The translations under genes and the position numbers were made by a program. Below, piece after piece: positions 275-64,000 of a stretch of DNA of 64,000 nucleotides (position 1 is its first letter; the number at the start of each line of letters is the position of its first letter). A model generated the notes under the pieces. It was given only the letters and a program-made list of their open reading frames with translations, had not been told where the DNA came from and ran no database searches. The DNA is from Macrostomum lignano. Lineage: Eukaryota. The stretch is from NCBI GenBank assembly GCA_002269645.1, contig NIVC01001171.1, positions 83,604 to 147,603 of the forward strand. The letters are read 5' to 3'.

Positions 275-2037
275 ATGTCCAACGAGTTCAGCTGGGAGGA
301 GATCCGCAGCCACACGTCGCCAGACAGTCGCTGGCTAGTGGTTGACAACGCCGTATACGATGTGAGCCGGTGGGCGCAAAAGCACCCGGGCGGCAGTCGC
401 CTGCTGTCGCACTACGCTGGCCAAGACGCTACGGAAGCGTTTCGTGCTTTCCATCTCGACCAGTCGACCGTAGCCAAATGGTTGGCGCCATTGCGCATCG
501 GTCGAGTCTGTTCGAACGATCCCGAGCGTCTAGTTGCTATGCGAACCGATTTCGAACGCTTGCGCAAAGACGCGCAGGCTAGGGGCCTGTTCAAGCCCAG
601 CTTAGTGTTCTACGCCCTGATGCTGGCCCACATATTCGCATTGGAGGCCATTGCCTACGCCTGTCTGCGCTTCTGGGGCACCGGCTGGTTGCCTTACATT
701 GTGGCGCTGTGCCTGTACGCTACGGCGCAGAGTCAGGCTAGCTGGCTGCAGCACGACTTCGGGCACTTGTCGGTGTTTCACAATCGCCGATGGGACGGCT
801 GGCTGCACCAGCTCACTATGAGCTATTTCAAAGGCGCCTCAGCGCACTGGTGGAAGCATCTGCACTATCAGCATCATTCCAAGCCGAACGTTATGAATAA
901 AGATCCCGACGTTCGCATCCAGCCGCTGTTCGTTGTTGGGAAAACTATGCCGAAAGAGACTGCGGCTAATCCTAAAAGTCCATACGTGCCCTATCATTTC
1001 CAGCACAGGTATTTCTTTGCCATCGGACCGCCGCTGCTGTTCCCGGTGTACTTTCAAATTGCCACTTTCAGGCACGCCATTTCGCGTCGCTGCTACGTTG
1101 ATTTGGCCTGCATGGCCCTGTTCTTTGCCAAGATCGTTGTACTGTACCGGCCGCTGCTGGGTCTGGGCGGCGCTTTCCTTTATTACTTCCTGGTGCGGAT
1201 GATCGAGAGTCACTGGTGAGTGTCGTGTTTGTTAGTTTTGAATGTGTGCATGCCGATATTCTGTTATTAACTAGCATGTTATGTTCGATAGTTTACCTGC
1301 TAGACTGTTCACTGGTTAGATTATTTACCTTTAGATAGTTCACCGGTTAGATTGTTCACCTATTAGATTGTTCAACTGTTCGATTGTTCACCTATTAGAT
1401 TGTTCAACTGTTCGATTGTTCACCTGATAGATTGTTCACCTGTTAGATAGTTCACCGGTTAGATTGTTCACCTATTAGATTGTTCAACTGTTAGATAGTT
1501 CACCTGATATATTGTTCACCTGTTAGATTGTTCAACTTTTAGATAGTTAACCTGCTAACTAGTTCACCTGTTAGATAGTTCACTTGTTACTCGTAGATAG
1601 TTCACCAGTCAGATAGTTAACTATGTAGCTTAACCTTCTAGTACCTTCACCTGTTAGACAGCAGCTTCACCTCAACTTTCTCTGTCTCCAGGTTCACTTG
1701 GGTGTCGCAGAGCAACCACATCCCCATGGAGATTGAGCACGACCGCGCTGAGCCTTGGCTGGCCCTTCAGCTGCACGCCACCTGCGACATCGAGAAGTCG
1801 CCATTCAACGATTGGTTCACCGGACACCTGAACTTTCAAATCGAGCACCACCTGTTCCCAACAATGCCGCGTCATAACTATTACAAAATCCAGCCGGATG
1901 TGCAACACCTGTGCCAAAAGTACGGCATCCGGCACGAGATTAAGCCGCTGTGGCGAGCCTTCTGCGACGTTATCGGATCGCTGCGCCACTCTGGCGAAAT
2001 CTGGCACGCGGCTTATCACGCCCATCATATGGACTAA
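275..2037 (+). CDS. FADS2: Front-end (delta-5/6/8-type) fatty acid desaturase with N-terminal cytochrome b5 domain, 2 exons, 428 aa
   Basis: Exons 275-1215 and 1692-2037; phase-2 intron TG|GTGAG...CCAG|G restores ESHW-FTWVSQ. Motifs: HPGG (cyt b5), HDFGH, HYQHH, QIEHH. Symbol denotes the family; positional specificity cannot be read from sequence. Confidence 0.95.
1290..1665. repeat. Degenerate minisatellite filling the desaturase intron
   Basis: Repeated gat(t/a)gttcacctgtta-type units. Confidence 0.85.
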
Positions 2038-2426: not shown

Positions 2427-2529
2427 TATTAATTTAATTTTTCCCCGATTTTAAATATATTGTTGAGCGTGTTTCCGGCAAATCCAGGCATCGGAGAAAG
2501 CTCGAGGTCTATATGTACATTCGGAAAGA

Positions 2530-3215
2530 TATTGAGCCAGTGAATCTGTATTCTAAATGTACATTAGGGGAAGAGATTGAGCCAGTGAATCTGTATTCTA
2601 AATGTACATTAGGGGAAGAGATTGAGCCAGTGAATCTGTGGTCTAAATGTACATTAGGGGAAGAGATTGAGCCAGTGAATCTGTATTCTAAATGTACATT
2701 AGGGGAAGAGATTGAGCCAGTGAATCTGTGGTCTAAATGTACATTAGGGGAAGAGATTGAGCCAGTGAATCTGTATTCTAAATGTACATTAGGGGAAGAG
2801 ATTGAGCCAGTGAATCTGTGGTCTAAATGTACATTAGTGGAAGAGATTGAGCCAGTGAATCTGTGGTCTAAATGTACATTAGGGGAAGAGATTGAGCCAG
2901 TGAATCTGTGGTCTAAATGTACATTAGGGGAAGAGATTGAGCCAGTGAATCTGTGGTCTAAATGTACATTAGGGGAAGAGATTGAGCCAGTGAATCTGTG
3001 GTCTAAATGTACATTAGGGGAAGAGATTGAGCCAGTGAATCTGTGGTCTAAATGTACATTAGGGGAAGAGATTGAGCCAGTAAATCTGTATTCTAAATGT
3101 ACATTAGGGGAAGAGATTGAGCCAGTGAATCTGTGGTCTAAATGTACATTAGGGGGAAGAGATTGAGCCAGTGAATCTGTGGTCTAAATGTACATTAGGG
3201 GGAAGAGATTGAGTT
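2530..3215. repeat. 45-bp minisatellite, ~15 copies
   Basis: Unit gagccagtgaatctgt(att/ggt)ctaaatgtacattaggggaagagatt; produces the artefactual ORF 2513-3166. Confidence 0.97.
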
Positions 3216-3979
3216 AATCACTTAAACCAGTGCTTATTAGCTCTTTAACAGATAGATCTCTAATATATAACTGATAGACCTTAAAATTGGTGAAATTGCC
3301 AACTGACATTGTTTTGATAATTATTGACAATTTATTTCAGCTTTTTTATTCAAATTGCGGCCATTTTTATACTTAAAAAGAGTTTAAAAATTTCTGCACT
3401 CTTAGCCACGATTTTTTTCTGCTTTTTAATCGTAAAATCTACCCCTATAAACTCTTGTGCACCTACTTTGCCGCTGCTGAAACTCAAAATCTAACATGCA
3501 GATGCGCCATTCCGATCTGTCTTGGGGCGTTTTTTAACTTTGTTTTCTTTACTTATTGCTGCTAATCTTTAGTTTGAATTTTTTTGTTAAAAATCACTTC
3601 GTTAGAGACTATCCCAGTGTCATTAAATTATTTTATATTTATTTTATTTGTCATATTTAGCCTTGACTGTTGTCATTTGTACTTAAATTGATGAATATAT
3701 AAACGCTTCTATTTTGTTTACTGTTGGTGAGCTTCTCCCTTTTATTGCACTTTTATTGTATACTCGCATATACTAGTATCAATAACGCTTATGCGCTTTT
3801 ACACAGCATACGCTAAGGAAGGTGTTGCACTTCTAAATGCTTTTGTTGAAATTTAAGAAGCAATCATGTTTATATTGAGGCTGACTTACTGATACCTTAT
3901 TTAAAGTACTTCATGTACCTAATTGATTATGCAGAGCGATTTCAATTTTTATTTCAGTTTTCAAAAGGTTTATTGGTCT

Positions 3980-4792
3980 GGTCAGGATTGGGTAGGCTAG
4001 AGTGTCTGATTGGTCAGGATGGGGTAGGCTAGAGTGTCTGATTGGTCAGGATGGGGTAGGCTAGAGTGTGTCTGATTGGTCAGGATGGGGGTTGGCTAGA
4101 GTGTCTGATTGGTCAGGATGGGGGTTGGCTAGAGTGTCTGATTGGTCAGGATGGGGGTTGGCTAGAGTGTCTGATTGGTCAGGATGGGGTAGGCTAGAGT
4201 GTGTCTGATTGGTCAGGATGGGGGTTGGCTAGAGTGTCTGATTGGTCAGGATGGGGTAGGCTAGAGTGTCTGATTGGTCAGGATTGGGTAGGCTAGAGTG
4301 TGTCTGATTGGTCAGGATTGGGTAGGCTAGAGTGTCTGATTGGTCAGGATGGGGTAGGCTAGAGTGCGTCTGATTGGTCAGGATTGGGTAGGCTAGAGTG
4401 TGTCTGATTGGTCAGGATTGGGTAGGCTAGAGTGCGTCTGATTGGTCAGGATTGGGTAGGCTAGAGTGTGTCTGATTGGTCAGGATTGGGTAGGCTAGAG
4501 TGTGTCTGATTGGTCAGGATTGGGTAGGCTAGAGTGCGTCTGATTGGTCAGGATGGGGTAGGCTAGAGTGTGTCTGATTGGTCAGGATTGGGTAGGCTAG
4601 AGTGTGTCTGATTGGTCAGGATGGGGTAGGCTAGAGTGTATCTGATTGGTCAGGATGGGGTAAGCTAGAGTGTGTCTGATTGGTCAGGATTGGGTAGGCT
4701 AGAGTGTGTCTGATTGGTCAGGATGGGGTAGGCTAGAGTGTGTCTGATTGGTCAGGATGGGGTAGGCTAGAGTGTGTCTGATTGGTCAGGAT
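3980..4792. repeat. 32-35-bp minisatellite carrying a CCAAT box (family A, array 1)
   Basis: Unit tctgattggtcaggat(g/t)gggtaggctagagtgtg. Confidence 0.97.
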
Positions 4793-5517
4793 TTCTATTA
4801 TATTCATTTATATCAAACGGCTTTGATATAATTACTTGGGATGGCAATTTTACTAATTGATATAAAAGCAAGAATTGTATTTTAATATCTATACTGCACC
4901 TTTATTCAAAGTACTTAATGCTTCTATGTGATGATATATTGTGAGTCTATGTATTGCAATTTTGCCAATAATCATTTTTTGCAGGCATGAGAATAAGCTC
5001 GCTTTTAGACATAAATCGCTCAGTTACAATCGTACCCATATACACGATCGTCTATATTCGGGTTTTGTATTGAAGAAGTTATTTTTATTCGTAATTTAAA
5101 TATTTTTTCTATCAGCTTTTTATCTGTTTAGTGTTGAATTTAGCAAGGCAAAAAGCACATCTTTATCTTGTCCTGCATAACCCAACTATTGAGAATAACT
5201 GCTTTGATTAAGTGTTACATTTGCTTGCTTTTGCCATTGGTATTCAAAATTGATTGCTTAGTATTTACTGTTAGTAGTATTTTGTCAATTTATTTTTAAG
5301 TGGCGCTGCTTCTACAGTGGTTTGTAGTCTATTATTACACCTGTACCCTGCCCCAATTGTTATTGTTCAGTTTTCAATCTGGTTTAATAATATAATAAAC
5401 ATCTAGCTGCTAACTGTCGCTACGAACTTATCCTTTGCGATCAAGTAGAAAATTTTGTAATTGATATGCTTATCATATCCGGCTGATAGGGTCGTGTCAG
5501 TATTAGAGTGTGGTGAT

Positions 5518-6736
5518 GTCTGATTGGTCAGAATGGGTAGGCTAGAGTGCCTGATTGGTCAGGATGGGGTAGGCTAAAGTGTGTCTGATTGGCCACGATG
5601 GGGTAGGCTAAAGTGTGTCTGATTGGTCAGGATGGGGTAGGCTAGAGTGTCAGATTGGTCAAGATGGGGTTGGCTAGAGTGTCAGATTGGTCAAGATGGG
5701 GTTGGCTAGAGTGTCAGTTTGGTCAGGATGGGGTTGGCTAGAGTGTCAGATTGGTCAGGATGGGGTAGGCTAGAGTGTGCCTGATTGGTCAGGATGGGGT
5801 AGGCTAGAGTTGCCTGATTGGTCAGGATGGGGTAGGCTAGAGTGTGCCTGATTGGTCAGGATGGGGTAGGCTAGAGTGTGCCTGATTGGTCAGGATGGGG
5901 TAGGCTAGAGTGTGCCTGATTGGTCAGGATGGGGTAGGCTAGAGTGTGTCTGATTGGTCAGGATGGGGTAGGCTAGAGTGTGCCTGATTGGTCAGGATGG
6001 GGGTAGGCTAGAGTGTGCCTGATTGGTCAGGATGGGGGTAGGCTAGAGTGTGCCTGATTGGTCAGGATTGGGTAGGCTAGAGTGTGTCTGATTGGTCAGG
6101 ATTGGGTAGGCTAGAGTGTGTCTGATTGGTCAGGATGGGGGTAGGCTAGAGTGTGCCTGATTGGTCAGGATTGGGTAGGCTAGAGTGTGTCTGATTGGTC
6201 AGGATGGGGGTAGGCTAGAGTGTGCCTGATTGGTCAGGATTGGGTAGGCTAGAGTGTGTCTGATTGGTCAGGATGGGGGTAGGCTAGAGTGTGTCTGATT
6301 GGTCAGGATTGGGTAGGCTAGAGTGTGTCTGATTGGTCAGGATGGGGGTAGGCTAGAGTGTGTCTGATTGGTCAGGATTGGGTAGGCTAGAGTGTGCCTG
6401 ATTGGTCAGGATGGGGGTAGGCTAGAGTGTGTCTGATTGGTCAGGATTGGGTAGGCTAGAGTGTGTCTGATTGGTCAGGATGGGGGTAGGCTAGAGTGTG
6501 TCTGATTGGTCAGGATTGGGTAGGCTAGAGTGTGTCTGATTGGTCAGGATTGGGTAGGCTAGAGTGTGCCTGATTGGTCAGGATGGGGGTAGGCTAGAGT
6601 GTGTCTGATTGGTCAGGATTGGGTAGGCTAGAGTGTGTCTGATTGGTCAGGATGGGGGTAGGCTAGAGTGTGTCTGATTGGTCAGGATTGGGTAGGCTAG
6701 AGTGTGCCTGATTGGTCAGGATGGGGGTAGGCTAGT
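5518..6736. repeat. 32-35-bp minisatellite (family A, array 2)
   Basis: Same unit as 3980-4792. Confidence 0.97.
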
Positions 6737-12560: not shown

Positions 12561-14589
12561 ATGCCAACGTTGCCTGCAGACTGTTCAGTCTCAGTATCTA
12601 GTCCAGGTGAATCTGTTATTGGTCATGACGCCTACTGATGCACTTCGATTTTAACCGGCTTTTAATGCTCAGATTTAGTTATTTTGTTTGTTATACAAGC
12701 AGAGGACACTCTTCTGCTTAGAGAATATCCGACCCAGTGGTCACGATAGGCTTGCATGACGTAATGTACAATGTCTATAGATTGCCACATACAAGGTCTC
12801 GGAAAAATATTGCATGTAATTATTATACATTGAGTCCCTGCCCTGGCTCTAGTCATTCTTTTCTATGTATTCGCTTTTGTGTTACTTAACTTATAGTGAA
12901 AACTCTTTTTAAATAAAATATATGTTTGTCGGTTCCTATAAATTGATCATATTTTGTTCAATTAGCCTTGAGCGCAGTCTTTGTTTGCACTCTATTCTCA
13001 ACTATTTAATATTCAATTTGTAGGTGCGTTATAGTCTAGATCCTTATACAAAGACTTAGGCTGAGCTGCTGGGCCACCCTCCCAGATCCTCAGTTGCTGG
13101 GCCACCCTCCCAGATCCTCAGTTGCTGGGCCACCCTCCCAGATCCTCAGTTGCTGGGCCACCCTCCCAGATCCTCAGTTGCTGGGCCACCCTCCCAGATC
13201 CTCAGTTGCTGGGCCACCCTCCCAGATCCTCAGTTGCTGGGCCACCCTCCCAGATCCTCAGTTGCTGGGCCACCCTCCCAGATCCTCAGTTGCTGGGCCA
13301 CCCTCCCAGATATTCAGTTGCTTGGCCAGCTTCCCAGATATTCAGTTGCTTGGCCAGCTTCCCAGATATTCAGTTGCTTGGCCAGCTTCCCAGATATTCA
13401 GTTGCTGGGCCAGCTTCCCAGATATTCAGTTGCTTGGCCAGCTTCCCAGATATTCAGTTGCTTGGCCAGCTTCCCAGATATTCAGTTGCTTGGCCAGCTT
13501 CCCAGATATTCAGTTGCTTGGCCAGCTTCCCAGATATTCAGTTGCTGGGCCAGCCTCCCAGATCCCCAGTTGCTGGGCCAGCCTCCCAGATCCCCAGTTG
13601 CTGGGCCAGCCTCCTAGATCCCCAGTTGCTGGGCCAGCCTCCTAGATCCTCAGTTGCTGGGCCAGCCTCCTAGATCCTCAGTTGCTTGGCCAGCCTCCCA
13701 GATCCCCAGTCGCTGGGCCAGCCTCCTAGATCCTCAGTTGCTGGGCCAGCCTCCCAGATCCCCAGTTGCTGGGCCAGCCTCCTAGATCCTCAGTTGCTGG
13801 GCCAGCCTCCTAGATCCTCAGTTGCTGGGCCAGCCTCCTAGATCCTCAGTTGCTGGGCCAGCCTCCCAGATCCCCAGTTGCTGGGCCAGCCTCCTAGATC
13901 CTCAGTTGCTGGGCCAGCCTCCTAGATCCTCAGTTGCTGGGCCAGCCTCCTAGATCCTCAGTTGCTGGGCCAGCCTCCTAGATCCGCAGTTGCTGGGCCA
14001 GCCTCCTAGATCCTCAGTTGCTGGGCCAACTTCCTAGATCCTCAGTTGCTGGTCCAGCCTCAGATGCCAGATTTTTCACTGATTTAAAGTCACTCAATTT
14101 AACTCGGATTCGCTTATATCTGATTTTTTAGCGAGTAAAGCCACGAGTAACTGCGACACGCCTGACAGCAACTGCACTCTGCTCTGCTACTGCAGCTGCG
14201 GACAGCGGCTTCTGAGTGGCGGCTCCTCCAGCGATTCGTCCGGCTCCTATAATACTACTATTGGCGACAATTGGCACTTTGCTTATCCTTGCACCGGAGT
14301 GTGCGATAAGAATAATAACTGTCCAGGCTATGAAGACGAGAATGCGCTCATGTGCGATCATCTGTATTCTACTGACATCAAATGGTCGTGGGATGCGTTT
14401 GTTAAAATGTTTGAACGACCGCAGATTCAAATATTGACTGCTTTTCTGGTCCTGTGCTTACCGGTTATGGTGCTCCTCATGCTGAATAAGAAATACCGCT
14501 GGTTGCCTTGGATGCTTAAACACCCGCCCCCGCCACGTTCCAGCGCTGATAGCGCCCTGCTGGCTCAGCAGCAGTCTGCCAACACCTAG
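12561..14589 (+). CDS. Paralog of the 9997 protein: CYCSC, LDLa-like module, TM helix, short Pro-rich tail; 5' end uncertain
   Basis: Open frame from acceptor ttttag at 14131 to TAG 14589: SKATSNCDTPDSNCTLLCYCSC...YPCTGVCDKNNNCPGYEDENALMCDHLY...QILTAFLVLCLPVMVLLML-NKKYR...HPPPPR. Phase-1-compatible upstream exon 12561-12606 (ATG...CCAG|GTGAAT) is tentative and has no signal peptide. Confidence 0.7.
13062..14062. repeat. 28-bp minisatellite (family B, array 1)
   Basis: Unit ctcagttgctgggccagcctcccagatc with three blocks of variants; also present at 51342-51692. Confidence 0.97.
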
Positions 14590-15125: not shown

Positions 15126-17035
15126 ATTTTTGGCTAACTGGGATGGATTAACGAACGGGGAAGTGGATTAACGTGTACGCGGAATTAAGTGAGGTTGATT
15201 AACAAGCATAAAAATGGATTAATAGATAGTATTAACATATCTAGGAAGACAACGGGTTGTAGTTTCAAGAGATAGATTAAAATGTAGTAGAATTGATCAA
15301 CTGTTTCTAGTTGAATTAAATAAGTGTGATAAAAGTTGAATTGACTGTTTGTAAGGTTGAGCACAAGTTTATTAGCAATTTTGCTATTAGCAATTAGAGT
15401 GCGATGTCTTAGCGAAACACTGTATAGACTAGTACTCGTATTCGCTTTCGTTTTCACTTCCGATATTTATTTTACTTGTACAATAGTCTTTTATCAATCC
15501 TCCTTTCATTGCAACAGTTTTAAATTGACAGGTTCATGTAAAGTCAATTTGACAACGGAATATTAATGGGTATAACAAAAAATGACTGATGAAAATTTAA
15601 ATCGATAACAAAAAAATCTGCTTTTGTAGGCTGCTTTTTAGTTTGGCTTATTTAAAAAAATCTTTAACTTTGTTATACCGTGTCCGCAAAATTTTCCGGT
15701 TTAGAAGGTTTCCGGGTTTGTAAAAATATAAAAAAACAGTCTAATAAGCTACTCGTATATGCCAGCTTTTCATTCGGTTTTCTAAGCGAACCATTTGGCC
15801 CTAGATGTGACCCCTCGGCCATAATTGCCTTTTGCTAACTTAACTGCATAAATAGGCATAGAATCTGATATTCTTGATCAATAAACTTATTGCATTGAAA
15901 GCCTATATTACCGTCTTACTCTTCTCAGTAATGAATCTCTTAAAAAATTTAAGCATAAGTGACAGAATTTGGCGAACCGTTGTGATTGTCTGACCTTAAA
16001 ATCCGGCTGAGTCCGGAGTCCTCTTGCCCTGGGTGCCTCTTCTCCCGACCCCTTGGCCTGGCCCCCAATAATGAGCTGGATAGGCGATGCCCTTGGGTTG
16101 GCAGCAATAGAGGTGGACGGTCTTCCCGCCTGGAGTCTCCCCCTCGGATACAAGCCTTCCAGACTCACTCCAAATTAGAGCTGGGTAGTGAAAAGCCTTG
16201 AGGCTCGAGACCTACAGTTGTCGGATTCTGTATAGGATCGCTCTTGGTAATTAGCTGCCCAGACTCGCTCCAATAGTTTAAGCCATTTCCAAGGTTTAGG
16301 AGTAGTTCCTCACTTGGACCGCTTTCAGTAGTATCCCAAACTTTTCGTTTTCAAATTTCTCTGCGCACACCCAAAAGACTTGCTGGCTGGGGGGGTGGTC
16401 TGGGTGGATTCGGTCCTAGCACCGTCCCTGATTCCACTGTTGGTTTGGCGGTGTCTTGTACCATAGGCTTGAAGTCCCTCGCCCCTTCCCTAGCTTTAAG
16501 CTGGGGCCCAACTAAATTGGTATTTGGGTATCTCGGGTACACAGTCTTATCTGTGCCCTTGGCAGTGCCCTCTGCGGCAGAGCCCCTCCCAGGGCTGATC
16601 CGCGGGTAGCTAAGCTTCCCACCCCCGTTTAACAACAACCTTAAAATATCAAAGCTTCATTTTAAAAGCTTCATTAATTCTATAATTTTTTCTATGCAGA
16701 TTTGAATTCATCATTTTCGTTACACCTGATCTTATTGTTTATATTTGTTTGTTTCAATTCTTCGTTTTATTTGCAATGTACGGTAAAAAATTGAAAAACC
16801 TCCCCTTTTTTCTTCGCCATACTTCGCTTAACTTAACTACTGAATATAATAAGTAGTATGCTGCACTGTTTTTATCTTTTTAATTCTATTTTTAATATAT
16901 GACATGCGTTTTGCTTGGAATGAGAACGGCTTTTCCCATGCAGTGTTGTACACAAACACATGCACTGACTCTTTGGACTCCGCTTCTCTTGTACAACCGA
17001 AATTTAAAGAATTTTACGCTCTAGATACTGAAGGA

Positions 17036-17760
17036 ATTGGTCTGCACACTCGATACCTGCTCCTCAGTCACACCTGATCATTGGTCTGCACACTCGATAC
17101 CTGCTCCTCAGTCACACCTGATCATTGGTCTGCACACTCGATACCTGCTCCTCAGTCACACCTGATCATTGGTCTGCACACTCGATACCTGCTCCTCAGT
17201 CACACCTGATCATTGGTCTGCACACTCGATACCTGCTCCTCAGTCACACCTGATCATTGGTCTGCACACTCGATACCTGCTCCTCAGTCACACCTGATCA
17301 TTGGTCTGCACACTCGATACCTGCTCCTCAGTCACACCTGATCATTGGTCTGCACACTCGATACCTGCTCCTCAGTCACACCTGATCATTGGTCTGCACA
17401 CTCGATACCTGCTCCTCAGTCACACCTGATCATTGGTCTGCACACTCGATACCTGCTCCTCAGTCACACCTGATCATTGGTCTGCACACTCGATACCTGC
17501 TCCTCAGTCACACCTGATCATTGGTCTGCACACTCGATACCTGCTCCTCAGTCACACCTGATCATTGGTCTGCACACTCGATACCTGCTCCTCAGTCACA
17601 CCTGATCATTGGTCTGCACACTCGATACCTGCTCCTCAGTCACACCTGATCATTGGTCTGCACACTCGATACCTGCTCCTCAGTCACACCTGATCATTGG
17701 TCTGCACACTCGATCCTGCTCCTCAGTCACACCTGATCTTCATCATATGCTCCTCAGTCA
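17036..17760. repeat. 44-bp minisatellite, ~16 near-identical copies
   Basis: Unit ttggtctgcacactcgatacctgctcctcagtcacacctgatca, no spacers. Confidence 0.98.
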
Positions 17761-18699
17761 CGCCTAGTGGGACACCGAAAGTATGCAGTATCTGTGCTGA
17801 GCATCCTGCTGTCTGCCCTTGGCTTCATCATATGCTTCTAGACTTGTCCCATCCACTCACGCAGTGTAGACAGCGGCCCTGACTCTCATTAGGGGCTTAG
17901 CTGACCGCAGGAAAGACATCAAATGCTAGGGTTAGGATGTTCTTCAGGAAGTGTACATGTAGCTCGTAGGGTCTGTTGGTCTGTTGGAAAGTTGTCTCCT
18001 GAGTTCACAGCTAATAAAAGCTGACGAAGAGTGACTCCAGATAGCTTTTTACACATATTTAGAAGGACAACATGTGATTACAATCCGTTTAGCTCTTTAC
18101 GTAGTGAATCAGTAAAAGGTAACTCAATATAAGATACATGTTAACAACGTTAAATAATTTGACCTTACATGTATATTTCACAAATATTAATAGTTGAATC
18201 GTGAAAATTGTTTCTTTGAAAGTTATTAGTTTATTACTTGATAATCTTAATTCTATTTTGTGGGTTTCAGTTCAGACAGCAAATAAAATTGATTTTTCCA
18301 AAAGGAATAGTAGGATATAGTTTAGATTATCAAATATTCTAGGTAGTATCAAATGACAAATTTGACAAAAACAGAAAATAACTTTTAAAAATGGTCAGGC
18401 ACAAGACTATATGGATTTAAATATTTTATCACAGGCCTGTGGAATTTCCATTAATTCATTTTGCTGTTGAAAATATATGCGTAATAAAAACTGTTACTTC
18501 AGCAGCTTAGCGGCAGCCTTCAAACCAGTTGATAAAAAATATCTTTTTAGTTAAGCCGTGGATTGGCCTGCTGCCTGGCTAGACTCCACAATGCCAGAGG
18601 CTCTCTGCAAAAATAGTTGTTTAAAAAAATCTGGGCTTGTGAATTACGAACAATACACAATAATTAATTCAGTAGTATTTAATATAATATATTATTTTC

Positions 18700-19190
18700 T
18701 ACCCCTTTCTTACGCTCGTAACACGCCCGTGTCACTTCTCTATGGTCCCAATTATATAGCCAGCTATCCTCGTGGTCGGAGTTGATTTGTCTATGTACAT
18801 TAGCCAAGCCAACCGCCGCGTGAAAGACAGTGTACATAGCTTAACTAGAGAATATTCTTATCTTGTCCACCTCCCCTGACTTTCTAAGCACGTCGTCACT
18901 TCTGTATGTACAATTTTTTTGCCAGCTTTCCCCGCGCTTTGAGGTTGGGGGTTACGCTGCCAATGTGCGCCATTAGCTAACCGCCGCCCGAAAGACAATG
19001 TAGCTATAATATATTCTTCTCTTGCCTCTGACTTTCTAAAAAAGACCTTGTCACTTCTGTATTCGTCTATTCGTCCCAATTTTATTGCCAGCTATCCTCG
19101 CGTTCTGGGGTTGAATGGGGATTAACTGCCAATGTACATTAGCTAACCGCCGCGCGAAGGGCAATGTACATCCACAGCTATTCATGAACT
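18700..19190. repeat. Degenerate ~160-bp tandem repeat, 3 copies
   Basis: gccagct at 18759, 18921 and 19087; gtcacttct and tagctaaccgccgc/gccaaccgccgc recur at a similar period. Confidence 0.7.
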
Positions 19191-20764
19191 GTTTAAAAAG
19201 TTATCACGTGATTTTGACTTTACACGATCGAGTGAGTTCTCTCTCTATCTTTAGTCAATTACGCAGAAAATGGTAGGGATTTGCTTTACTTGCTACTTAG
19301 TAACAGTTCGTGCCCAATGAGCTACAGATTTTTTATTCCAATTAAAATCAAAATTTAAAAAAACTCACCGAAATTTTCTTCAACTGCCGAAGTCGCCACA
19401 ACTTCTGCTCTTCTTCTTTCTTCTTCTTCCTGTGCTCCTCGATCTGAAGCGGAAGATTAAAAGACATCTTGTCACTGTGTTATTTTATTTTAGCGAAATT
19501 TGATCGCGACCTCAAAATTCATTTTATCAACCCGAGTATCTTCTGCATTTTTTATAAATCAATATGCCCTTGATTGAAGGGTTGGAACGAAGAAGACGTT
19601 GCAAGGCCAAGAGGATCTTTGCATCCAGATTCCCATCCGTCCTCTGTGGCTTCATCAAGCAGCTTTTCTTTATCCCCGATTCCAAATAGGATGCGAGCAA
19701 CCTCTCTACTCTCCTCTCCGTTTTAGATGGCTATTCAAGCCTATAAAGTATAGATGGCATATATAGTTTATCTGCAATCCTTTACTCAACCGCGGGAGCA
19801 AGAAGTTAAAATTAAATTGCACTTTTAAAGCGTCATAGCTAAATAGCAAGATAGAGCAAGCTTCTAATGAGATATTTCGTGTTGCTAAGAGGGACAAGAG
19901 AGACTTGGAAACTGACCAATTGACATGTCTGGACCGAGCCCGCAATTCAGTTCTAAGCCAAGTACATGTAAGTGTGTCACGCAATCCAAGCCCCGTTTCG
20001 GTGCGTTCAGTTTAGACTATTAAACTATTCAGACGACATTCATTTTACTATACCAGTAGTACATGTACAGGTATACTAAACGTTTGGATGTTTACGGGAC
20101 GGGAGGGACTTCTCAGAAGATCAAGCCTGCAGCTCTTATATTTTTATAAGTACGAGTGTATATTATATTTGTATGTTAGTATTAGGTTTATAAAGAATTG
20201 GCCAATTCAGACAGATCAATCTTAACCCGAAATCAAAATCGAGAGAGAGAGAGAGAGAAGGGGAGAGTCGCTGGAAAATGCATTACTGAGATAGAAAGTT
20301 TCCAGCTTATTGGGACACTAAATTCCAATGATATCACCCTATGGATTTCTGACAATTGAAGTCTTCAAAAATATTCAGCTTAGCCAGGAGTTTATTTAAT
20401 GCGCAGCTAGATAAGCGTAAATATTTATGATGAAGTATATAGGTTGGATAGTGTGCTGATTGCAGAAACAGAATTTACATTTTTATGAATAGGCTAGCTA
20501 GGTGAATTAGGGTCAACATGCGTGCAACATTTTGTCTGATGTTGAGACTGTGAAAATACTTAATTAATTATTGGATATCACTAAAAGAAACAAAAAATCA
20601 ATGTTTGTGTAGATCCATTCCAAATACAATTCTGAGTAGGTCTTATTAACAATATAGAGAGTATGGAATCGGTACCTTCCGTGACGAAGTTTTCAATAAA
20701 AAATTCTGTTTGTTATTATTGCACTCTTTGTTGCTCCGTGAAAAAATCCCGAAAAAACTACTGA

Positions 20765-21216
20765 CCACAGATACTAAAATAACTAGGATGGGCCACTCAG
20801 GCATATATACTTAGTAAAACAGCTTTCTACTTTTTCAGTAGCAAAGATGAATACATAAGCTATTACATAAAAATAAAGGCAGCTGAAATGACTTTGATAA
20901 GTTTAGTCTTTAGAAGCCCAGCTTGCAGGCGTAAACAACTTGCTAGTTGGTTCAGCAATAATGTACATTGGCCAGTCCACTGAAATGTACATGGCAGCTT
21001 TAGGCTGGAATTCCGAGCAAGGCAATAAAAATTGGGGCGGGGCGGGGGGGTAGTGTGGAAAGACGCGGTTGGAGGGTTTAGGCTGGGGGTAGAAGCCAAT
21101 AAATGAGCCTTGGCTTTAAAATACATTAAATGCTTCTGTTTAACTTACTACTGAACTGAAAGTAGCCTACACGCATATGTGCTGAGTGGCCCATCTAGTT
21201 ATTCTAATATTTGTGG
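20765..21216. mobile_element. MITE-like non-autonomous DNA element (452 bp) with terminal inverted repeats and flanking direct repeat
   Basis: Left end ccacagatactaaaataactaggatgggccactcag; right end ctgagtggcccatctagttattctaatatttgtgg; TACTGA at 20759-20764 and at 21217-21222. Confidence 0.8.
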
Positions 21217-21235
21217 TACTGATTAAGCGTTCGAA

Positions 21236-22648
21236 TCAGCCGCGACGGCTGGCCAGGATCCAGATTGTGGCCACCAAGTTCAGCAGGCAGTAGATGACGA
21301 AGAACATTCTGTCCAGCACGATGCCCATGTACCGCCAGGTGTTGGCGAAGCCCGACCCGCCCTCCGGCGGCGGGTGACGGCACGCCGACTTATTCGCCAT
21401 CATTGTTGGCGCGGTCGGAATTGCCGCCTCCTCGGTTCCGGCGTCGCAGTCGAGATTCTCATCCTGTCCCTCGTCGTCCTTGGTGCCGTCGTTGTCTCCG
21501 TCTCCCTGATCGGCCCTCGCGCCGGACGTTGGACTGCGCGGATTCATGCGGAACGACAGCAGCTTGACGCGGCCATTGTGATGCGTGGCCCGGAAGCCGA
21601 CCAGCGGGCCCAGCCGGTAGCAGCAGGCCGTGAGCCAGGCTGGCGGGCAGAAGTCGTTCGGCTTCAAGCTGATATTGTAGGCCGCGATGACCATGAGTGT
21701 GCACAGGCCCACTAGGCAGACTGTCAGGCAGAAGTACACGCCTAGGACCGGCACGGCGTCGCCTGAGCGGGGTATGTTGTCGGCGATGAGCAGCAGGAAC
21801 ACCACCAGGGACAGCAGGATTGTGGTGGAGTAGGCGATCCGCTCGCCGCACTCGGTCGGCAAGAAGAAGGAGAACGCGGCCAGCCAGGCCAGCAGCATGC
21901 AGGGGAACAGCATGTAGGCCTGGTGGAACAGGTACTTGCGCCGCAGCCGCAGCTGGAACACCACCTCGGAGTAGATGGCTGGCTCGGCGCTCTCGTCAAC
22001 TCCGACTCAACTCGGGAAGCCGGTGACCTCCCATTCGCCGTTGCTGGCTGACTCGAACGCGTGATCGTTGGCATCGCCGGCCTTGCGGGTGAGCAGGAAG
22101 TTGCTGGTGTCCTTCGTCCAGCTGCTGAAGGTGATGTTGCAGCGCTGGCTGTCGTAGGGGAAGCGGCTGATGTCGATTCGGCAGAAGGACTTCAGCAGGG
22201 CCTGGGCGCCCAGTTTGACCCAGCCGTCGCTGCGCACCCGAGCCGTGGACTCGCCGTAGATGAACATGCCCTCCTCGAAGTTGCCGTGCAACGACTCGTA
22301 GAAGATGAGGTCCGGGTACCAGAGCTCCTCGGATTTGATGGCGAACTCGGTGACATTGTTGAATCCGGCCGGGTCCCACATCAGGCGGCAGTCTCGCCAG
22401 GTTGACTCAATCCACACGTCGACGCTGAGCATCTGGGTTGGCTCGTCCAGGTCGAACAGCTGGTAGAGCAGCATGTCCTGGCCGACCTCGAGTCGGTCGC
22501 CCTGCTTGCAGATCGGCATGGCATTGCTGTTGTATCCATCGAACAGGCTGGTCAGAAGGTCGTCGTAGATGGTCTTCGCGGCAACGGCCTTGGCATCGCA
22601 GGGCAGCAGCAAAAGTAGCAGCGGGAGGTGCAGCAGAATCCGAGGCAT
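21236..22648 (-). CDS. Intronless nicotinic acetylcholine receptor-type (Cys-loop, cation-selective) non-alpha subunit, interrupted by one in-frame TGA at 22007-22009 (null allele, young pseudogene or recoded)
   Basis: ATG 22648 with signal peptide; Cys-loop CRIDISRFPYDSQRC; WYPD; TM1-4 with GER before M2; the two track ORFs (22007-22690, 21236-21964) are in the same frame, joined by FPS*VGVDESAEPAIYSEV; no vicinal Cys-Cys. Confidence 0.9.
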
Positions 22649-23761
22649 TGTCAGAGAGATTGCGCCAGAATAAATCGGTGCAACTTTCAAGTTTAAAGCG
22701 GTGACCTGGGAATCTCGGGCAGCTGGGCAGGGCAGAAGGTTTCGGCAAGAATGGTGATTATTTATCAGTATTCCAGGCCGAGCGTTCTCTTAGCTTGCCG
22801 CCTGCTTGCGTCTTGCGATTCTGTCCAATCTGGGGCAGCGAAGCCGCTTGTTCCAGTTTCTAGACTTGTTTCCAAGCTAAAGTCGCGGCACACCAGCATC
22901 GGTTTTTAGGGCTGGCCTGGCTTCAGGCTTGCACGGACGCGCACTTTTTATTATCGACTCCCCCTCCCTCCCCTCCTCTTCCTCCGGCCCCTCAATGCTT
23001 GGCGACCTTGCTTGGCGTCAAATGGAGAGCAGGATTCGTCGGGAACAGAGAGAAAGAGAAAGATGTGGGGCCGGCACAAGGGGAGGCAGGGAGGTGCCGT
23101 ACGCAGCCTCCACCCAACCTGACACACTAGCTGCATCTATCTATCTGCTGCCTGTCCAAAGCGGCAAATCTCAAGCGCCATTAGTCTCTCTTCGACGCGT
23201 CGCTTTCTTTCTCTGTTCTCATGCGTCTTCTCCCCCTCTGTATCTCAAGTCCGTGTACTTGTACACCATCTAGTTTAGTCACTATAGCTGCTGTTGAACT
23301 GAGTACTGTAGAGGCTCGATAGACAACGGATCGGAGTTGGCCATTGTGCTGATATAATTTGGCTATTCATTTCTAGCTCCAACTTTCATGCTGTCCGGCT
23401 CTAGCAGTGGGTGGATAGGTAATCTATCTACCTATCTATAAGTAGTATTGTTATCTACTAACGGCTTGGCTCCGTTGTAGCTTCAGAGATATTTTCTGAG
23501 CAGAGTAGCCAAGGAGACCGCTAACGTAAATCTGGAGTTATCGGCCTCTTCCCCACTCACAAAGCTTCCACACAGCGGGGATAGGAGGGGAGTTTCAGCG
23601 ATATAAAAGTCTACTAATTTAACATAGAATTATTTTGCTCTGGTGAAACCAATTTTAAAAAGATTGGCCTTTAATTTCTTAGCTTCTCAACAGAGATTAG
23701 AAATTGAGAGAAATCGCGAATGAAAATGAGGTTGTTAACAGTAGCTTTTCCAGGTTTTGTT

Positions 23762-50631
<26,870 letters not shown>

Positions 50632-52873: not shown

Positions 52874-64000
<11,127 letters not shown>

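Follow-up and report, generated by a model that had tools for sequence, protein, structure and literature searches.

The window, a 64,000-nt stretch of Macrostomum lignano contig NIVC01001171.1, carries on its minus strand an intronless gene for an nAChR-type Cys-loop subunit (21236..22648), as assigned from its translation and from Pfam and PDB matches. Positions 16236-26913, which include this gene, match that contig of the Mlig_3_7 assembly (GCA_002269645.1) with 100% identity. Translated from the ATG at 22648 to the terminal TGA at 21236-21238, the gene comprises 470 codons with one internal in-frame stop, a TGA at codon 214 (22007..22009, minus strand), which was read from the sequence and its translation in the minus-strand context GGC TTC CCG AGT TGA GTC GGA and is followed by G. 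The Neur_chan_LBD domain before the TGA (9.2e-42) and the Neur_chan_memb domain after it (1.6e-23) lie in one shared frame according to Pfam, a same-frame pairing that is far beyond chance, and each of the five alternative frames of the receptor region contains 4-19 stops. Translation and the Pfam matches on both sides confirm what the initial annotation had described, namely a single in-frame TGA in an otherwise open nAChR-type frame of ~470 codons.

The pre-stop ORF (22010..22648, minus strand; 213 codons) encodes a signal peptide and the ligand-binding domain up to the end of strand β8 (Pfam). Its Cys-loop, C156-x13-C170 (CRIDISRFPYDSQRC; 22139..22183, minus strand), was located by translation and clade alignment; the core C156-RIDISRFPYDSQR-C170 is of the FP(F/Y)D type with 13 residues between its two cysteines, both of which are invariant across the clade alignment. 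Past the stop, AF2 predicts helices at residues 239-261, 269-289, 298-327 and 433-467, corresponding to the four transmembrane helices. M1-M3 (residues 239-327; 21668..21934, minus strand), with a GER motif of the cation-channel type where M2 ends on the cytoplasmic side, were placed by AF2 and by alignment to α4, and M4 (residues 433-467; 21248..21352, minus strand) is modelled by AF2 at a pLDDT of about 90. The post-stop ORF, counted from its first ATG (21236..21913, minus strand), encodes 225 aa including Neur_chan_memb and, by exact look-up, is the sole product annotated by NCBI at this locus of NIVC01001171.1 in the Mlig_3_7 assembly. The Mlig_3_7 annotation is transcript-based, with transcripts placed on every genomic copy (PMC5730564).

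The closest solved structures in the PDB search are nAChR α4 and β subunits (E about 1e-58). The vicinal Cys-Cys pair at the tip of loop C is absent from the window gene, its homeolog and every clade member, and because of this absence the gene is assigned, from its sequence, to the non-alpha, cation-type subunits. No tandem paralogs of the receptor gene were found within the 64-kb window. A tiny intron that would skip the TGA was considered and rejected, since the sole GT..AG candidates, at 12 and 20 nt, are below a workable intron length and the longer one would also break the frame; the single-exon structure of all relatives likewise speaks against this reading. The earlier remark that there is no room for an intron thus holds, the paralogs and the homeolog all being intronless.

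In both homeologs, the LGIC gene falls within the annotated span of an IP3-receptor gene of the same strand (~18551 to beyond 46549, minus strand; annotated products of 2765 and 2767 aa), whose MIR (46016-46549), RIH (43778-44326) and RIH_assoc (32217-32981) domains were recognized on the minus strand of the window. The LGIC gene is nested in an intron or the 3′ region of the IP3-receptor gene, or lies within one transcription unit with it; M. lignano is known for polycistronic trans-spliced precursors (PMC5730564). More than 40 mini- and microsatellite arrays, with periods of 4-69 nt and up to 213 copies, lie in the intergenic and intronic space of the window (for example, at 2506-3213, 3979-6735, 13067-14061, 24473-27707, 44390-45199 and 48757-49608), where they generate many spurious long ORFs; such arrays fit a genome of which tandem repeats make up 15% (PMC5730564). 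At 275-1219 (plus strand) lies exon 1 of a front-end fatty-acid desaturase with Cyt-b5 and FA_desaturase domains, 99% identical to BOX15_Mlig034529g6, and cadherin-repeat exons are found near the other end of the window at 57452-58300 and 60963-62030 (plus strand).

The receptor clade and the intact homeolog

The proteins nearest to the receptor gene in the protein search are all from Macrostomum lignano and belong to a flatworm-specific LGIC clade that is intronless. The paralogs L001 (CDS at L001:3001-4380) and L004 (DNA of the closest annotated paralog, PAA72103.1; CDS at 5001-6449, dS to the window gene about 0.7) and the homeolog locus L006 on NIVC01000946.1 (CDS at L006:6001-7434) are single-exon each; the genome mean is 4.9 introns per gene (PMC5730564). 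The alignment to L004 is limited to the CDS, with no homology found in the flanks. GC3 varies widely between paralogs, with the window gene at 0.87, L004 at 0.78-0.83 and L001 at 0.61-0.64.

Protein alignment to 11 members of the clade shows the window gene to be seven residues short exactly at the stop, a shortfall of seven codons that was overlooked in the initial annotation. The relatives read GFP(S/A)-(F/Y)Nxxxxxx-(I/V)G-xDES at this place, whereas the window gene reads GFPS-stop-VG-VDES. The long form is present in 11 of the 11 clade relatives and in both paralog DNAs, and the intact clade members possess 7-8 extra β9/loop C residues relative to canonical nAChRs. Near the position of the TGA the relatives carry N, K, Q, R, A, H or T, and never Cys or Trp. 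Comparison of the paralogs and orthologs at this codon, which had been suggested earlier, yields relatives with the long form and no stop.

The homeolog was reached through exact look-up of the post-stop ORF followed by listing of its cluster. The 90% cluster holding the 225-aa post-stop product has one other member, PAA74466.1 (BOX15_Mlig013616g1), an uninterrupted protein of 477 aa encoded on contig NIVC01000946.1. This contig is about 97-98% identical to the window across the whole region, the receptor copies are about 99% identical in DNA, and the two loci share their flanks, the MITE-like element and their place inside the IP3-receptor gene span. On this sequence comparison, the PAA74466.1 gene is evidently the homeolog of the window gene, a designation chosen because M. 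lignano is a neopolyploid. Its subgenomes S, L1 and L2 are all represented in Mlig_3_7, at a distance of about 2% from one another (PMC10733133), and duplicated blocks of ≥95% identity add up to 180 Mb in this assembly (PMC5730564). The pre-stop protein is identical to residues 1-212 of PAA74466.1, and over their whole length the two proteins differ solely by a 10-to-3 codon replacement and two residues. A disabling lesion thus stands opposite an intact 477-aa close copy in the same genome, as expected of a pseudogene or null homeolog. Exact protein look-up gave no match for the pre-stop 213-aa ORF, protein P0001 or the 377-aa ORF of the window.

The MITE-like element at 20764-21217, which has imperfect terminal inverted repeats of about 37 nt (ACCACAGATACTAAAATAACTAGGATGGGCCACTCAG and its complement), starts 19 nt past the terminal stop; apart from the homeolog, no further copies were found in the window or the compared loci. 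Its insertion was considered as a part of gene decay and rejected, as it is common to the intact homeolog, and for the same reason the element must be older than the lesion.

Because the window's own proteins serve as representatives of the 90% clusters concerned, close homeologs were invisible to the large protein search, in which the best match was 79% identical. The search with the IP3-receptor exons came back empty, probably via the same blind spot. This effect could mislead analyses of other duplicated genomes, and it is circumvented by combining ORF look-up with cluster listing.

The lesion at codon 214 and its effect on the protein

The lesion is evident from the pairwise DNA alignment with the homeolog (L006:6001-7434), in which 9 nt at 22004..22012 (minus strand), AGTTGAGTC (Ser-STOP-Val), stand in place of 30 nt, GCGTTCACGCAGCTGACGCCTCGACAAATC, a net change of -21 nt. 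The codons GCG TTC ACG CAG CTG ACG CCT CGA CAA ATC, encoding AFTQLTPRQI, were lost and AGT TGA GTC was gained, and GFP-AFTQLTPRQI-GVDES of the homeolog corresponds to GFP-S-stop-V-GVDES in the window. The junction in the window reads CCCGAGTTGAGTCGGAG, and the junction-spanning stretch TTCCCGAGTTGAGTCGGAGTTGAC has the intact-form counterpart TTCCCGGCGTTCACGCAG...CAAATCGGAG. The window state is taken to be derived because all relatives have the long form. A plain 21-nt deletion predicts CGA CAA ATC at this place, and 5 of these 9 bases mismatch the window at a background divergence of 0.7%; since independent point mutations are not credible at such a density, the change is best explained by one complex deletion-insertion. 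The initial annotation had proposed a young pseudogene or null allele that arose through a CGA-to-TGA mutation. The first part of this proposal is borne out by the intact homeolog, but the point mutation is ruled out by the DNA alignment, because the TGA sits inside the 30-to-9-nt replacement.

A local repeat scan identified the 7-mer GAGTTGA twice near the junction, as a derived upstream copy that contains the TGA (22007..22013, minus strand) and as an original downstream copy (21996..22002, minus strand) that, from comparison with the homeolog, is the putative template of the insertion. The downstream copy corresponds to codons G-V-D of the family-conserved VGxDES motif. Within 2.5 kb the homeolog has the downstream copy only, and the second copy of the window lies 11 nt upstream of it. 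Filler copied from beside the break is a known signature of alternative (polymerase-theta type) end joining, and the inserted bases look like the scar of a templated-insertion repair. This reading rests on one 7-mer, and, judged after the fact, repeats of this kind include about 2% of CDS positions.

These features also bear on whether the lesion is real. The assembly would be at fault if the true locus had the intact 30-nt form and the 9-nt junction arose during PacBio assembly or short-read polishing. Reason for caution comes from the assembly itself, as chimeric scaffolds combining different subgenomes account for 36% of the Mlig_3_7 length, and reads that map to several places are common (PMC10733133). 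However, long-read errors are mostly single-base indels, and the replacement of 30 nt by 9 nt that duplicate neighbouring sequence resembles a repair product instead. Nor would a base-call error, another option of the initial annotation, typically produce a complex deletion-insertion. Furthermore, ordinary SNPs separate the two contigs on both sides of the lesion, and the window is for this reason regarded as a distinct copy and not as a mis-polished duplicate. An assembly or polishing artefact is therefore considered unlikely, and the assembly probably reflects a real allele.

At the protein level, termination at codon 214 should give a 213-residue ectodomain fragment that, according to the models, is without β9, loop C, β10 and the channel. 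In the AF2 model of the intact paralog, β9 is formed at S223-I232 (pLDDT about 80) and is followed by loop C and β10, whereas the model of the window product has no β9 and its residues 213-226 have a pLDDT <50; both models were built at equal alignment depth (14 sequences) and have a mean pLDDT of 66-67, which corresponds to moderate confidence. The complete β-sandwich with its β9-loop C-β10 hairpin is not formed, ten β9 codons having been replaced by Ser-stop-Val, and even a read-through product would be predicted to lack β9. The stop had been placed earlier at the entry of loop C; it does lie near loop C, but in the would-be strand β9 just before it and not in loop C itself. A loss of function of the window copy appears the probable outcome.

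The truncated 213-residue product could nevertheless be functional, as a secreted AChBP-like ligand sponge or as a dominant-negative partner of other subunits. It retains the signal peptide together with the greater part of the ligand-binding domain, and intronless mRNA may escape splicing-dependent nonsense-mediated decay. The missing β9, loop C and β10 speak against such a role: to our knowledge, AChBPs and all LGIC ectodomains need these elements to complete the β-sandwich and the binding site. In addition, a lesion this young has had no time to come under selection for such a role, of which there is also no sign. A functional fragment is thus very improbable, and the AChBP-like ectodomain listed among the options of the initial annotation is implausible on structural grounds.

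Selection, age of the lesion and recoding

The dN/dS of the window gene versus L004 is 0.173 before the stop and 0.180 from β10 to M3. The initial annotation had looked to a comparison of dN/dS on either side of the stop for signs of relaxed selection, and no relaxation relative to L004 was seen. In a relative-rate test, 20 window-specific and 28 paralog-specific amino-acid changes were counted (p = 0.31), indicating no acceleration, and at clade-invariant sites the window protein has two conservative changes, no more than intact members. These comparisons show that the whole gene was under selection until recently. Because constraint measured against a paralog is compatible with both a very young lesion and recoding, the comparison was extended to a closer relative.

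Of the 1401 sites outside the lesion, 10 distinguish the homeologs, 8 by synonymous and 2 by non-synonymous changes (omega 0.078). The two non-synonymous differences, M416I and A418T, are both in the variable cytoplasmic loop, and the window copy carries M416 and A418. Neutral drift since the homeolog split predicts 12.9 non-synonymous changes in the window copy (P(≤2) = 2.5e-4). Because the non-synonymous differences are too few for neutral drift over this time, the lesion is much younger than the split, and purifying selection on the window copy lasted into the recent past. With 3.4% of possible substitutions being nonsense, the otherwise perfect ORF and the absence of a second defect are explained by a very young lesion. 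The two non-synonymous differences in total are too few, given this youth, to show any relaxation after the lesion.

Synonymous divergence in the CDS is 8/332 (2.4%), compared with 36 mismatches (+28 gaps) in 8443 positions (0.43%) over the 8.4-kb homeolog alignment, which covers window positions 20241-28595 versus L006 and is mostly flank; the counts behind this several-fold gap are small, and a faster mutation rate at GC-rich third positions is conceivable.

If the UGA were recoded in a programmed way, through readthrough, selenocysteine insertion or A-to-I editing to UGG, the product would be a full-length 470-residue subunit with a short β9/loop C region. The open downstream frame and the equal long-term dN/dS on both sides of the stop would suit this possibility, the shortened region is just 1 residue below that of human α4, and flatworms possess selenocysteine machinery (PMC2873472). 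However, the recent origin of the lesion fully accounts for the open frame, and the TGA is missing even from the 99%-identical homeolog and lies in newly inserted DNA; it has no conservation history, contrary to the conservation among relatives that the initial annotation had named as support for recoding. Selenocysteine is further opposed by the lack of Cys in every relative at this site and around it, and a SECIS element, for which a search of the 3′ region had been suggested, was not detected, an Rfam scan of 19000-24000 on both strands giving no family match at E≤10. For readthrough, the context is UGA-GUC, and UGA-G is the genuine terminator of the paralog L004, in agreement with the earlier judgement that this context is not a leaky one; the window gene's own terminator is also TGA. 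The 120 nt after the stop fold no better than shuffles (z +0.39), giving no sign of a downstream stimulatory RNA structure, and the 301-nt fold around the site, examined for double-stranded RNA that could support A-to-I editing, has z = -0.70 with 21 of 100 shuffles equal. The recoding option of the initial annotation consequently finds support neither in the homeolog nor in a SECIS element or local RNA structure; it is extremely improbable and effectively excluded. Genome-wide reassignment of TGA is dismissed, as TGA serves as the terminator of the window gene and of L004 at the very place where their homologs stop.

Interpretation and comparison with known systems

Based on the alignments and the selection analysis, the window gene is very probably an ordinary, very young null copy, or incipient pseudogene, of an nAChR-type gene present in duplicate, and one complex deletion-insertion inactivated it. 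The gene is one of two assembled homeologous copies in the neopolyploid M. lignano. A repair event may have removed the 30 nt encoding strand β9 (AFTQLTPRQI), and the gap could have been filled with 9 nt partly copied from the GAGTTGA located 11 nt downstream, a filling that by chance would have kept the frame and spelled TGA. The repeat suggests templated repair, in what was probably a single event. The intact sister copy, PAA74466.1, presumably supplies the function, and the loss may be tolerated for this reason.

A variant of this history, in which an expressed allele undergoes low-level readthrough of its UGA-G by near-cognate Arg, Trp or Cys insertion to give a subunit without β9 and with a short loop C, deserves hardly any credence. 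If true, the read-through subunit would co-assemble with products of the intact copy and alter receptor properties, which would make it a neo-functional allele in a neopolyploid.

As a young null copy, the window gene offers a clean view of how duplicate-gene loss begins in a recent polyploid, with one scar and no other decay. When a perfect ORF with one stop is encountered, comparison with the homeolog should precede any consideration of recoding. The 225-aa "protein" of Mlig_3_7 represents the final part of a broken receptor gene, and its entry should state that it is a pseudogene or null copy of BOX15_Mlig013616; the significance beyond such annotation bookkeeping is slight.

Among known systems, selenoprotein and UGA readthrough genes likewise carry an in-frame UGA after which a homologous frame stays open, whereas the window gene is without a SECIS element, UGA conservation, a leaky context or a stimulatory structure. 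With nAChR non-alpha subunits (human α4β2, PDB 5KXI; Torpedo/muscle β), the window gene has in common the LBD and memb domains, the C-x13-C Cys-loop, the four transmembrane helices and the GE(R/K) motif before M2. In contrast to these subunits, it belongs to a Macrostomum/flatworm-specific intronless clade and has no vicinal loop C cysteines, and the window copy is interrupted and without β9. The homeolog PAA74466.1 differs by 10 further SNPs (8 synonymous) beyond AFTQLTPRQI versus S-stop-V. The combination of a deletion with a short filler copying GAGTTGA from 11 nt away resembles the products of polymerase-theta end joining, although in the window the mechanism is deduced from one scar. Finally, although the window case is extremely early, with a single lesion and no detectable relaxation, it is similar to fractionation after whole-genome duplication in that one redundant homeolog is disabled and the other is under purifying selection.
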